A stretch of 64,000 nucleotides of DNA from Pelomyxa schiedti (taxonomy: Eukaryota > Protista > Evosea), in contig JAHLWZ010000826.1 in NCBI GenBank assembly GCA_020536535.1, forward strand, positions 1-64,000. The letters run 5' to 3'. The notes under the pieces are model-generated. The model saw only the letters and a list, made by a program, of their open reading frames with translations. It made no database searches and was not told the origin of the DNA. The position numbers and the translations under genes were made by a program. The first letter of the stretch is position 1; each line of letters starts with the position of its first letter. Below are positions 51,054-56,930 of this stretch, piece by piece.

Positions 51054-52741
51054 TTAGATGCTAGAAAGTACAAGCCTTTTAATGGATTGGGCCAAGGTAT
51101 CTGCAATTTCCTGGAGGTGAGTGTATACCAGGATAACAAACTGCAAAGAGCCCGCCAGCGTTCCACACCACATGATCGGGTCATGCGGTGTGAAGTCATT
51201 CCCACCAGCAGTGAGTAAACTGGAGACACGGAAGAGGCTCCTTGGATTGTCTCCAGCTTCGTCGATCCCGAACTTGGTGCCGGCATCTCCCATGCTGGAA
51301 ATCTGTGAACATAAGTTTTGTGTTCGGTGAGAAGGATTTGATTTGTGTTGTTTGTTGATTGTGGTTTGGGCAATTACCATCACATTCAGAGATTTGGGGT
51401 TGAAGTCAACCATCGGCGTGTAGTCGGGACCCAAAAATATCTCACTTGAGTGCTGATGGATTGGGCCACCTGGAACGGATTGCGCTTGATGTGCCTGTGT
51501 CATCGCTGTGTGCCACTGGCGTGAGAGTTCCCATAAACATGCGGTTTGCGCCTCTGTGGTGGATGAGGTTGGAACAGCGGGTTGGAATGGTGGTATAATG
51601 ATATATGACACAGTAAATGAAAGCCCCATGTCATCAGGTGGATGAAGGTTGAGTGGGATACATCCAGTCACTGTGGGTGGGCATCCCAGTGCGAGGGTTT
51701 CAGCTGCCATAAAAAGGCACGGTACGGTGGTGGAATTCAGCTTGCAGGCCTGAATGAAAGATTACAAAATGCGCGAGTCAGACAAAGCACCTTCAAAATT
51801 GCTATCGTTTCAGCAACAGAGAACCTGAAGGTTGATCTGGTGGCTTTAACGATGGTACGATTGCGCTCAATAATCGGCAGATATTTCGCGTCAAAGGCAT
51901 CCCAACTTTCAGGCTCCAAAAATGAGGAACCTCAAAATGGAAATCAGTGTCCAATTTCAATGTTTATCTTCTCTCTGCTGAGTCTCACCAACGTGTCTGC
52001 ATTCATGAGGTTGTGGAATGGGGAGTGGTGCAAGTGTTTCACCATTCAGTGCTTGTAAAAGGTCTCTGCACAAATTTGCAAGTGAAACGCCATCCTTGAT
52101 CAAAAAAATGAAAAAGGGAATCAAAAAAGACAAAAGAAAACGCACGATGATGCTGTGAGAGAAGAGGAAATTCAAGAAAATGGCCTTGGAATCCCTGCAG
52201 GTGCTGACCACACACTTCCAAGTTCGTTGAAAGACCCCACCCTCACTTGATTTTTTTTGTAAGTGCGTAATATCACAGGCAACACAAGGCTACTTTGCGT
52301 GAGCCATCAGTATTTGTTGGGCTTCAGAGGAAGACTCTAAATCACGGAAAGACAAGGGGAGCTCTTCATTTGAAATTGAAGGTGGAATCTTCAGGTATCT
52401 TGGTACCCGGGAATAAGCTCAAACACATATCACAAATGGTAAACAACAACAACAAAGAAGAACCTGTCAGAGGGAGGCCCAAACCGAGCCCGCAAAAACG
52501 GATGTCGAACACAGAGACCCGAAAAAGCAGCGATTACACGTCGCTGAATTTCGGATTTTGGTAACGCGGGGTCGCTCTTGCACTCCACCTCGATGAGGCA
52601 CGACACCGTCCACAGTCCAAGACGATGTGGTATGAACTACGAGAGAAAAAAAGAAGAAAAATCCAAGGTAAACGTAAGATAGTAATGAGTGCTGACCTCG
52701 GGTATCGACAGGCGGAACTCGACCACCTCGTGACTCGCCAT
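51054..52741 (-). CDS. CoA-dependent acyltransferase, tandem copy B
   Basis: Highly similar duplicate of 49170-50849 with the same exon motifs; introns are more diverged than exons. Confidence 0.7.
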
Positions 52742-53017
52742 TTCCGAAACGACAATTGGAAAAAAAAATGCAATTACGGCGTTTGATCTCCCGGAGATCA
52801 AGCAGAGACAATTCTGCAGAGGAGTGCACTTCAAAGTTGTGTCAGGAAGACCAGTGCTTCAAGACAAGTATCTTTAGAAAGAGCTTGAGACAGGGCGTGA
52901 TGACACACCGTTCTCTTAGATTAATCCGAATCCCTCACCCTGGCGCACTGGTGGAGTTGTATTTGATCGTATTCACCTAAGTAACCTTACTCAGACGTTA
53001 CGAGAGTTTAGTTTGAA

Positions 53018-55215
53018 ATGACTACGATACCCACCAAGGAAGGGAGGGTTGTGTTGTTTGGGCCTGGTGGCGTTGGAAAATCCACACTCATGGAATCGTG
53101 CGTTGTTGCGTGTTTGTCACAGTCTTCGTGTTTATTGCTCTCCGGGACTAGCTTTTGTTCTTATCTCTTTTCTTTTTTTGCAGGTACTGCAGTGGGCGAT
53201 GGTGTGAGTATCTTTACGAGGGTTCGCTGGAAGTTTCTGTGGGTCTCCCAGCCATTCGTGACGTTTCTTTTAATTCGTTTAATCACGATGGAGTAGTATA
53301 GAAAAGTGTTGGCTGTTGATACCGTTCAAGTGATCTTGGACTTTTGGGATAGGTAGGAGGTTACTTGTTATCAACATTGTGGGGAAAAAAAAAAGTGCAG
53401 GGCAAGAAGAATACTCTGCGATACGGCAGCTCTAGTAAGTAAATCAAAAGTGAGATCTTTATAATGCTCTTGGCAAACTCTCTTCAATCAGTCTCGATAG
53501 AGCAAATGTGATCCTTTTATGCTTTGCTCTAAATGATCGAAGTACCTTTGATGAAGCTTTGACACAATATTTACCTGAAATTAGGAAAGTAGCACAGGTA
53601 CTCAATAAGACTGGTTTCCCCATTCGTCTTCTAAGTTTCTTTTAGGTGGTAGTCATACTGGTTGGCCTCAAACTGGACCTTATAGACCCGGCAGCAACCA
53701 CCAGTGGCGTATGTACTTTACTTTGCATGGAACCTCTTACTCATTGAGATCTGCAGTCACCTCTAGGGACCTATGTATCATTTCAAGAGGGCACTTCTGC
53801 AGTCATAAAAAATGCGCTGTATGGCTATTTTCAATGCAGGTAGGTGTGTGGGTCTATCTTTTTCCGTAACATTATTACCAATCAAAATTTTAAGTTCAAA
53901 GCAGTATGTTGGTTTGGACAACCTCTTTGAGGAAGTATGCAGAGCTGGGATGTTTTCTGATGCAAAGTCTGTATCCAAGTCTACCATGGTAGCCAAGAAA
54001 TCTGGATTCTTCAGCTTTTTTTCCAAAAAATCGCATAACAAGCCAACACACTCTACAAAACCGTAAGTGTGCCGCCTCACAAGGGTCTTTTCCTCATTTT
54101 ATTCAGTGCTCACCATATCACGGTGGATATAGCAGCGGCAACTGCTGTGCAAAGCTCACTGAGTGTCATCCCGAACTGCATTTGGCTTCGTATGCAAAAC
54201 GCAGGCCAAAATGATTCTACCTCACCACTCAATAGTTGTAATGGAATACCTTGACTTTGTTGCACTAATCCGGGTCTCTCGAACATGCAAGCTATTATAC
54301 CACCTGGCCAAGACAGAGCCAATATGGACAAATGCATTCCGTGGAGTTTGGATTTACCCTGGTTGTGTTAAAGGATTGAGTTGGAAAAACACCACATTCA
54401 CGTGGGATCTAGCAAAGTGTTTCCAGAACTATGTTCCCCCTCCACCGAGACGCCGGCGTGTAAGTTTTAGCAAGATTGTCCAATTCTCAGATTGCGCAGT
54501 CCAGTTCAGATGACATTGTATGCTTTGGGCCAAATACGAGTATCTTGCTGTTCAACAACAAGTATTGTCCAATGAAAGACCTGACTGTTGGTGACCAAGT
54601 TCTTGCTTTCTATCCCACTGACGGAGATAATGGTGGCTTCTTATCTTCTACTATCGTTCATTGCATTTGGAAGTGTGCACTTTACAATACTATAAAATCT
54701 CACTCCGACTTAGATGTCCGGTGCGTAAACCAACTCCGATGATTGTTATTAGCAGCAAATCGGCGACACCGCCAACCACTGAGCCAATTCTTGAAATCAC
54801 ACCGGACCACCCTATCCTACTTCTGAACGGCCGCTTTTCGCGGCACTCTGTTGTATCACAAGCAACCAATAATCCCTACAAGTGGTGCCTGCCAACATCT
54901 GTTGGTGAACCGCAGATGGTTGATGTGGAGTATGTCTACAACCTGGCCCTGCAGCCACTCCCACTCCCACAGCAACAACAACACAAAACACCTTCACCAT
55001 GCATCAACAGCAGCCAGTCCAACTCACACCGGAACGGTGATGACACACAGAGCCGTGGGGGTGTGATAGTTGGTGGATGGTGTTGCTGCACACTTGGGAT
55101 GAGTGTTCCTGGATACCCTGACGACTGGTGGGGCACGGACCGGGTCATCCAGTGGCTAGAGTCCAGGCCCGACTTCCCAAATGTGCAATCACAGCCCCCG
55201 CACAACAAGAGCTAA
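53018..55215 (+). CDS. Spliced Rho-family GTPase + F-box + Hint (Vint-type) fusion protein
   Basis: G1 GPGGVGKS, G3 WDS|AGQEEY, G4 VGLKLD, G5 CS|SK. Introns 54063-54106 and 54190-54235 give SLSVIPNCIWL|LVMEYLDFVALIRVSRTCK...IW (F-box). Intron 54460-54490 leads to DDIV-CFGPNTSILL...DLTVGDQVL. Intron 54673-54713 leads to ITPDHPI, VYNLAL, GVIVGGWCCCTLG, DWWGTDRVIQWL. Confidence 0.75.
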
Positions 55216-55290
55216 AAAATAAAATAAAAATTGGTTGTTAAAGTAGCCAAGTTGGTAACGGTTTTGGTTTTTTTCTCTCAAAACAGACAC

Positions 55291-56930
55291 ATGGAAGAAC
55301 AGAGAAGGCGTGCGTCCCACGGCGGCACCAAACAAACACAAGAAACACGCGACGAGAAGGTTTTCCGCTCAGAGGGACGTTGCACACGGAAATGTTTTTG
55401 TTTTTTGAAGTACTTTCTTCTCTTTTGTGGCGCTCTGATCTTTTTTCTGGCGACTTTGCTTGTTACTTTGGAAGCATGCGTATATTTCCACCGAGGGTTT
55501 TCCAGGTAGGTTTCTCTTTTTCGTCACCAATTCAAATTTTAAGGTTGGAGATTCCTGCCCCTGTTAAATTTTCAGATGCCAGTGTGGTGCAAGGGAGAGA
55601 CTCCTCAATTTCAGTTCATACAGATTTCAATCTCCTCTCACTGCTTGTACCCAGCTCTGAGTACCACTGGACCTACGAAGATGAAGATTAATCGATTTTA
55701 TATATTATTCGCTGAAAAGTGATGGGTCTCCCGCGGGCACAACTGCGACCATCGAGTACGACAGTTGGTTCGGCACTGTGCAGGTCAGGTGCCATATGAC
55801 TGATGTTTCCTTCTCTCAGGGTTATGTAACACTGGTCCTTTCTTGTGCAGGGTCAGCGACAACTTACCAACGCAAAACTCACACAACCGGCGATGTTGAA
55901 GCAACCTTAGTTTGCACTACTGCCGTCAGCCTCACAAATGACTGGCGTATTGTTTGCAATCCCTCAGTGCAGGTGAGATGGACCCACCTGGAATATGGAG
56001 GTTATTTTCAAGAGCAGTTGGAAGCTTGGAAAAACTGGATCATAGAGCCCTGGCGAGTGAGCTTCTCTTTCAATCTCACATTTTACTCAGTCACACTGTT
56101 AGATCGAATCTTGGATTTCTGAGAAATTGTCCCAAGTTCCAATACGTGAGACGTTAAACCGGATGTGGCAACATCTCAATGATGCTATTCAGATAAGCAC
56201 TGTTGAGCTGTCAAACTTCAAAGCTGAAGATGTATGGCTGCAACTAAATCCGAACGCATTGTCGGTGTCACCACTCACATTCTCTGGAGTGTGGATGCAT
56301 GTTTCCATTGACCTTTCCTGCAAACCGGTCATTGCCCTTGGTTATAAGCCAGCCTCTAGCTCTCCTGTTACGGGGTGCCCAAGCTTCTCTTCCGTGATCT
56401 CTGACCGCGGAATTGATGCAGCACTGGCATTTCACCTTCCTTACACTGCATTACACATGGAAGCATCGAGGCTGCTGCCGTTTGTGATCGGACCCACTGG
56501 ATTTTATAGAGCAAAAATAACAGTGAAATCTGTGCAACTTTACTCTTCAGGGAGAATGATTGTTGCCGCAGTTGATGTTGATGCCAACAAAGTGAGCAAT
56601 GCCACTGGAGTACTTGATCTCTGGGGAGAACTACAATGGGACTCAGCCAACAGAAGGCTTTCTGTTACTGATGTTGACTTCCACCCAGAAACCAAGAAGT
56701 ACATCGAAGGAATGTTTGCATGCACTGACTGGTTGCTCCATGACAGCCGTCTCAAGGAATTTATTTCACGTGAACTCAATTGGAACCTCGGACTTCAACT
56801 TGAAAAACTGAGGGAGCATGTGTCAGAAAACCACAGATCCTCCAGCAATGCGGACTACAGTTTTGGTCTGCACAGTTTTGACGTACAGAGTGTTGTTGCA
56901 GATGACTCGGGGATGATCAAGTCACTCTGA
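55291..56930 (+). pseudogene. DUF4403-like copy 3, disrupted
   Basis: In-frame TAA at 55689-55691 plus a frame change before YYSLKSDGSP, with no GT donor to rescue it. C-terminus truncated (DSGMIKSL* versus DSGITLMGSITGQGSLSLKPLR*). Confidence 0.65.

Follow-up and report, generated by a model that had tools for sequence, protein, structure and literature searches.

The locus considered here, positions 53018–55215 of a 64,000-nucleotide (nt) stretch of Pelomyxa schiedti DNA (contig JAHLWZ010000826.1, positions 1 to 64,000; hereafter 'the window'), raises a simple question: does the apparent stop codon that closes its Rho-like reading frame really end the protein, or does it belong to an intron, such that one messenger encodes a small GTPase, an F-box and a self-cleaving domain of the Hint superfamily? 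An earlier note, made from the letters alone, had favoured the latter. We find that the GTPase, the F-box and a Hint domain of the 'Vint' type do reside in one gene on the plus strand, spliced as described there save for one acceptor site, and that a single spliced mRNA encodes all three; an architecture we consider supported because the RNA joints, Pfam, the paralogs, the match of the family profile to a Vint crystal structure (PDB: 8R2C) and the predicted fold all agree. Our favoured reading, held with moderate confidence, is of a real and expressed fusion, with autoprocessing by the Vint domain at Val326|Cys327 and docking to a Skp1/Cul1/F-box (SCF) ubiquitin ligase through the F-box.

One spliced gene at 53018–55215

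Three-frame translation gives the picture of a eukaryotic-type gene with many short GT..AG introns, in which the GTPase, F-box-like and Hint-like pieces lie in different frames (exons and joints in Table 1). RNA contigs from three single-cell libraries, labelled 'protist metagenome', were aligned with positions 52600–55700 of the window. They tile 53685–55213 with no mismatches and supply six GT..AG joints, again with 0 mismatches; a fourth public run contains every sampled word of the 53018–55215 stretch. In record 1 of run X1 three GTPase exons are spliced to the linker exon, and the splice spans the apparent stop at 54064–54066, which had been proposed to sit inside a GTAAGT donor and is indeed removed from the RNA with its intron. 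The linker exon is joined in turn to the F-box exon in X2 and X3 contigs, and record 2 of X1 spans 54168–55199, taking in the F-box and the entire Hint domain. The gene's extent and strand had been given correctly in the earlier note, and three of its four introns (54063–54106, 54190–54235 and 54673–54713) coincide exactly with those of the RNA contigs; for the fourth, the donor at 54460 was right and the frame is kept, but the acceptor had been misplaced, the intron ending at 54499 rather than 54490 with the loss of three residues (IAQ).

From exon 6 onwards the joints are those of the RNA contigs; exons 1–5 were inferred from paralog homology and the public gene model. The resulting model of 543 amino acids (aa) matches, end to end, a hidden Markov model (HMM) built from eight paralogs with the window's own protein left out (positions 3–497 of 500; 732 bits), which validates the 5′ exons of the model as well as its C-terminus, for which there is RNA. 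No second copy was found when the 543-aa model was compared by tblastn with the whole 64,000-nt window. The chain ends ...PPHNKS, with neither a CaaX box nor a terminal Asn, as had been read from the sequence beforehand.

The Vint domain, its partners and its relatives

Eight paralogs score above the Pfam cut-off for Vint (PF14623; 27.6–54.1 bits), as does the sister protein P0025 (53 bits). A family profile, made from an alignment of 25 rows that includes the window's two Vint pieces, matches the crystal structure of the Tetrahymena thermophila Vint domain (8R2C) with an E value of 1.2e-17, the alignment extending over the TP-HP block, the V-Y-N-L strand, the C-C-T-L-G strand and the WGT..V..WL tail. 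The fold was tested on the F-box+Vint region of the closest paralog (P0001:150–488), which shares 73% and 66% identity with the two pieces of the window. Its AlphaFold2 model has a mean predicted local distance difference test score (pLDDT) of 73, with values of mostly 82–96 in the Vint core, and the top PDB match of this model in Foldseek is again 8R2C (E 1.4e-6; template modelling (TM) score by target 0.70), followed by BIL2 (E 9.5e-5), Hedgehog (1AT0/6TYY; E 2e-4) and inteins. The Hint/Vint identity, for which an HMM and a structural match had been sought, is upheld on both counts.

Within the domain, Cys1 stands at the TGC codon where it had been placed and is conserved in the family, and the TPDH, VYNL and CTLG...WWGTDRV..WL motifs picked out earlier all fall at family-conserved columns. 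T-x-D-H-P is present in 41/41 family proteins and Cys1 in all of those whose sequence covers the site (34/34); conservation of the catalytic residues of the Hint domain is strict, whereas the motifs of the GTPase drift, G3 being degenerate in most paralogs, and this is the pattern expected were autoprocessing chemistry under selection. The window's copy has two low-complexity loops inserted in its Vint domain, and the family as a whole has a conserved C-terminal tail, PG..D.FWGT..V..WL..RPDFP.V. An intein was considered as an alternative identity and rejected, there being no C-extein and no terminal Asn.

The F-box had been described as 'clean', and its scores lie above the Pfam gathering cut-offs: 29.0 bits for F-box-like PF12937 (cut-off 24.3) and 27.7 bits for F-box PF00646 (cut-off 20.5), both measured on residues 1–450 of the public protein of the locus (P0002:1–450), the part of it that is correctly spliced. 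In a PDB search the family profile also matches the F-boxes of Skp2, FBXO3 and Fbxw7 and, less strongly, Hedgehog. The linker that leads from here to the Vint domain has a basic-then-acidic-then-Val pattern that recurs in the closest paralogs, with a run of four arginines a few residues before the predicted cut site.

The same portion of P0002 matches Pfam Ras (93.4 bits, E 1.4e-26). In the earlier note this domain was a Rho GTPase with G1, G3, G4 and G5 all intact; G1, G3 and G5 are so, but G4 reads LKLD, with Leu instead of the expected Asn or Thr, and switch I has Ser in place of its Thr. Its nearest PDB matches are yeast Rho1 and an Entamoeba Rho-like GTPase (76.6 bits), so that a Rho protein is indeed the best match, if only marginally ahead of R-Ras (71.7 bits). 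At the position of the Rho insert there is a 14-aa stretch, against 3–8 aa in most paralogs. Two sister proteins that combine the GTPase with Kelch (P0043 and P0025) retain a Rac-like DTAGQEDYDRLRPLSYP signature, which suggests a Rac ancestry for the GTPase; to us 'Rho/Rac-derived' seems a reasonable label, Rho itself being at most a tentative one. Just after the domain lies a basic-aromatic patch (KKSGFFSFFSKK / FSWFSK), kept in all GTPase-bearing members of the family, the Rac and Kelch ones included; we would guess that it binds membranes or serves in docking.

When the 166 C-terminal residues were searched exhaustively with HMMER against 1.84 billion proteins, no more than 32 reached E ≤ 0.001, and exact look-up identified most of these 32 as proteins of Pelomyxa schiedti. 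Pelomyxa has at least 12 F-box+Vint paralogs, in which the F-box+Vint module is kept and the N-terminal modules are swapped: at least eight, besides the window gene, are GTPase + F-box + Vint; P0025 and P0043 are GTPase + Kelch + F-box + Vint; P0014/P0034 are Kelch + F-box + Vint; and P0006/P0033 are F-box + Vint alone. One cassette borne by a small GTPase, by Kelch, by both or by none amounts to a natural experiment. Pelomyxa also has ankyrin + Vint (P0005) and Vint behind an uncharacterised N-terminus (P0015, P0016).

Outside Pelomyxa, this Vint subtype occurs in Rhodomonas transcriptomes and in metagenomes, with uncharacterised N-termini and including distant members (30–35% identity) from cryptophytes and metagenomes; no F-box was present in the non-Pelomyxa matches scanned with Pfam. 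Two word-indexed searches, one with the family alignment (best 8000 candidates, mostly Ras) and one with the F-box+Vint region of P0007, gave Pelomyxa plus two plain Ras matches, and fold searches of AlphaFold DB and the Atlas gave Vint in VWA, U-box and giant-virus proteins; among the matches of these two word-indexed and two fold-library searches, none was F-box+Vint from outside Pelomyxa. A language-model atlas search with P0006 yielded sub-threshold Vint/Hint leads (best score 0.71). Within the searches made, then, the F-box+Vint pair was found only in Pelomyxa. That the architecture had not been described, as the earlier note believed, holds for the searchable literature, in which Burglin 2008 was the sole paper on Vint to be found and we found no published description of F-box+Vint or of GTPase + F-box + Vint; but the gene is no one-off, and its paralogs already carry automatic Ras + F-box + Vint Pfam labels in public protein databases. 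On present sequence comparisons the architecture is a new one for a known domain, and the family a multi-copy, lineage-specific one of Pelomyxa.

Some further observations concern the relatives of this Vint domain. P0015–P0020, P0024, P0032, P0037 and P0040 (from Pelomyxa, Rhodomonas and metagenomes) combine an uncharacterised N-terminal region of ~300 aa with the same Vint subtype, Pfam seeing only the Vint; one pairwise test, of P0015 against P0018 from Rhodomonas, gave no significant homology of the N-terminal regions (E 0.028). Other RNA and DNA contigs match the CCTLG-coding positions 55084–55115, or 54790–54818 / 55161–55185, at 90–95% identity and with unrelated flanks; these short-match contigs derive from paralogous Vint genes expressed in the same cells. 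In the ESM Atlas, many Vint clusters are labelled Nucleocytoviricota (giant viruses), including some with U-box + VWA + Vwaint + Vint.

Table 1. Features of the fusion gene, in window coordinates
Feature	Position	Strand	Remarks
Whole gene	53018–55215	+	12 coding exons; 543 aa, 60 kDa; stop 55213–55215
Exons 1–6	53018–53097, 53184–53238, 53297–53352, 53396–53434, 53492–53597, 53646–53708	+	
Exons 7–12	53757–53839, 53895–54062, 54107–54189, 54236–54459, 54500–54672, 54714–55215	+	
RNA joint	53708|53757		Inside GTPase part
RNA joint	53839|53895		Inside GTPase part; intron 53840–53894 (equivalently 53837|53893)
RNA joint	54062|54107		Intron 8, 54063–54106, 44 nt, GTAAGT..CAG; contains apparent stop TAA 54064–54066; run X1
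RNA joint	54189|54236		Intron 9, 54190–54235; seen in 3 runs
RNA joint	54459|54500		Intron 10, 54460–54499, 40 nt, in frame
RNA joint	54672|54714		Intron 11, 54673–54713; seen in 2 runs
Ras-superfamily (Rho/Rac-derived) GTPase domain	53018–53940	+	~aa 1–176
G1 GPGGVGKS	53060–53083	+	Intact
G3 DSAGQ	53348–53405	+	Intact; intron-split
G4 LKLD	53667–53678	+	Leu where N/T expected
G5 CSSK	53835–53901	+	Intact
Basic-aromatic patch KKSGFFSFFSKK	53995–54030	+	Just after GTPase domain; from alignments
F-box	54162–54339	+	~aa 236–279; split by intron 9 (54190–54235)
Linker ahead of predicted cleavage site	54436–54520	+	PPPPRRRR (54436–54459), intron 10, then SSSDDIV
Vint-type Hint domain	54521–55212	+	aa 327–543; split by intron 11 (54673–54713)
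Cys1 (Cys327)	54521–54523	+	TGC; predicted scissile bond Val326|Cys327
Thr406, His409	54799–54801, 54808–54810	+	Within ITPDHP
VYNL	54934–54945	+	
CCCTLG	55081–55098	+	
WWGTDRV	55126–55146	+	
QWLESRPDFPNV	55150–55185	+	Vint tail

Proposed autoprocessing and its alternatives

Hint domains undergo an N-to-S acyl shift at their first cysteine. By analogy with this established chemistry, and from the conservation seen in the family, the Vint domain would perform such a shift at the Val326|Cys327 bond, using Cys327, Thr406 and His409; the thioester would then be resolved by water or another nucleophile, releasing a 36.4-kDa GTPase + F-box fragment (isoelectric point 8.7) from a 24-kDa Vint fragment. 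The released fragment would be expected, from its F-box, to dock on Skp1/Cul1, with the N-terminal GTPase perhaps serving as the target-binding module, as Kelch would in the sister genes; the resulting arrangement would be like that of RhoBTB, but for a cullin-1 ligase. Gating by GTP is plausible for this copy and not a family-wide rule, GTP regulation being doubtful as a property of the family because of the degenerate G3 of most paralogs. The RRRR run before the cut site and the KKSGFFSFFSKK patch are compatible, as circumstantial evidence, with a membrane-directing adduct that may replace prenylation. If cleavage does take place, the protein would be the first with an F-box to mature through Hedgehog-like autoprocessing and, together with the U-box Vint proteins, a second independent connection between Vint and ubiquitin ligases; it would also provide a testable handle on the function of Vint domains, so far tied to VWA proteins and for which we found no published function in the searchable literature.

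A bolder version of this scheme, which we think distinctly unlikely, sees in the F-box+Vint proteins ubiquitin-ligase adaptors of a new, self-processing kind: a lipid or protein nucleophile would receive the GTPase + F-box fragment from the Vint thioester, to give either a Hedgehog-style C-terminal anchor after RRRR, replacing CaaX prenylation, or a covalent link to the target. If true, and taken with the U-box-VWA-Vint proteins, it would suggest that the functional connection of Vint with E3 ligases is ancestral.

Several points weigh against the self-cleaving fusion. At the level of RNA, no single contig among the three single-cell libraries spans from GTPase to Vint, and in those libraries cover is zero over 53018–53684, that is, exons 1–5 (53018–53597) and most of exon 6; record 4 of X2 retains the stop-bearing intron 8, running unspliced through 53962–54189 before being spliced to 54236. 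At the level of the protein, the window's two Vint pieces are weak in Pfam (Hint 19.8 bits; Vint 15.6 and 14.6 bits against a cut-off of 27), and as single sequences they have no significant PDB match by phmmer; the G4 Leu and switch-I Ser may signify altered GTP handling; and F-box proteins do not usually carry their F-box on the C-terminal side of the module presumed to bind the target. The searchable literature yielded no published biochemical work on autoprocessing by Vint.

The fusion might be real and its Vint domain non-cleaving; a folded C-terminal module for binding or regulation, for example a substrate receptor, to which the GTPase or Kelch would be accessory. Vint here occupies the place, C-terminal to the F-box, where most F-box proteins have their substrate-binding domain, and the conserved tail of the family could serve as an interaction surface; in addition, the published literature searched gave no evidence of Vint cleavage. 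Against this, neither Cys1 nor T-x-D-H-P varies in any member, even among the distant ones at 30–35% identity, which is hard to explain without acyl-shift chemistry, and the fold predicted for P0001 matches autoprocessing Hint domains. We regard a non-cleaving Vint as rather unlikely.

Another possibility is that the locus makes mainly separate products, with the fusion a minor one: a GTPase that ends at 54064–54066 where intron 8 is kept, and an F-box+Vint protein that starts internally. RNA that can be read as the GTPase alone, up to 54066, does exist at least in partly processed form, and the retention seen in X2 record 4, within 53962–54314, could mean either an isoform of 216 aa with only the GTPase or no more than pre-mRNA caught during processing; this intron-retaining contig continues, spliced, into the F-box exon, however, and does not represent a transcript terminating at the stop, whilst the X1 contig described above splices across it. 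In favour of separate products, cDNA ends that carry template-switch-oligo tags lie at 53962, 54168 and 54750, and RNA depth climbs toward the 3′ end from zero upstream of 53685; yet three tagged 5′ ends at three places fit the 3′-biased, fragmented cDNA of single cells and not one promoter, and a 3′-rising depth is usual for oligo-dT single-cell libraries. The presence of stand-alone F-box+Vint genes in the genome (P0006/P0033) speaks for this alternative; that at least eight paralogs preserve GTPase + F-box + Vint in one frame, as here, speaks against it. Separate main products seem to us very unlikely.

The public annotation of the locus bears on the remaining alternative. By exact look-up its product is KAH3756351.1 (P0002), a 'Ras family' protein of 844 aa that follows the 543-aa model to residue 448 (...EPQMVDVE) apart from one 3-aa acceptor choice (ESYCSGRW in the 543-aa model against ESGRW in the public one, with the paralogs favouring the former). 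The public model then takes an internal GTATGT at ~54932 as a donor and skips ~760 nt into the next gene, near 55690; this adjoining downstream gene comprises open reading frames at 55778–56122 and 56127–56930 and has PF14356 as its precomputed Pfam domain. Because contigs of each of the three RNA runs continue without a splice past 54932, as far as 55183–55213, we conclude that the two genes are separate and the public splice wrong; as a result of this mis-splice the public protein is without the second half of Vint and its precomputed Pfam list has no Vint, such that, in practice, an error in the gene model hides the domain at this locus. That error, together with the origin of the assembly from single-cell DNA (PMC8887013), might raise the suspicion that the gene is a decaying pseudogene or an artefact of annotation or assembly, but this is scarcely credible and was rejected as largely refuted: the 12 exons, separated by canonical GT..AG introns, keep an unbroken frame, spliced RNA from three runs has 0 mismatches, and the paralog HMM is matched from end to end at 732 bits.

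Comparison with known systems

The self-cleaving, SCF-docking fusion that we favour has partial counterparts in several systems. In RhoBTB and in Dictyostelium RacA, a Rho GTPase domain is fused to an adaptor module for cullin-RING ligases (BTB, for Cul3). With RhoBTB the Pelomyxa protein shares a GTPase, probably Rho/Rac-derived in its own case, that lacks a CaaX box and stands on the same chain as a module for cullin docking; it differs in that this module is an F-box (Skp1/Cul1), in its additional Hint domain and in belonging to a Pelomyxa-specific family. The pairing of a GTPase with a C-terminal Hint domain in a eukaryote is also seen in an ESM Atlas cluster of Mucoromycota proteins, but there the GTPase is of the AIG1/GIMAP type, the Hint domain of the Hog type (PF01079), and the F-box absent.

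The BIL domains of ciliate BUBL loci (6Y75, 6TMM) likewise belong to the Hint superfamily, are likewise tied to the ubiquitin system, and are the second-best fold match (E 9.5e-5), although similarity of the family profile to BIL at the level of sequence is negligible (E 0.8). BIL domains differ in flanking ubiquitin-like domains rather than an E3 adaptor, and in having a C-terminal Asn, as is evident from the C1A-N143A mutants named in the entry titles. With Hedgehog/Hog (PF01079; 1AT0, 6TYY) there is in common a C-terminal Hint fold that starts with Cys1-Phe, has T-P-x-H and lacks a C-terminal Asn, for which reason we would expect, as for Hedgehog/Hog, cleavage at the N-terminal side only, the N-fragment passing to a nucleophile. 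The matches themselves are weak (Pfam Hint 15–23 bits, below the Hint cut-off; Foldseek E 2e-4), and, unlike Hedgehog, the Pelomyxa protein is not expected to be secreted and has the Vint tail in place of a recognisable sterol-recognition region.

Closest in the domain itself are the VWA-Vwaint-Vint proteins, of which Vint was defined as the C-terminal domain (Burglin 2008, PMC2362128). Shared with these (PF14623, 8R2C) are Cys1, the T-P-x-H-P block B, the V-Y-x-(L/V) strand, the C-x-x-L-G strand and the tail. The N-terminal partner is a different one in Pelomyxa, a small GTPase + F-box, and the Vint domain has two low-complexity loops and a Val before Cys1. Pfam found neither VWA nor Vwaint in the window protein or in any Pelomyxa paralog, which places the protein outside the VWA-Vwaint-Vint gene family as a new architecture of a known domain. 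In both groups no signal peptide is expected, processing would be intracellular, and there is, in some VWA-Vwaint-Vint members, an E3 ligase module (the U-box); Vint proteins had been predicted to be intracellular, with four carrying a U-box (Burglin 2008, PMC2362128), and given those four the F-box fusion of Pelomyxa would be a second link between Vint domains and E3 ligases.

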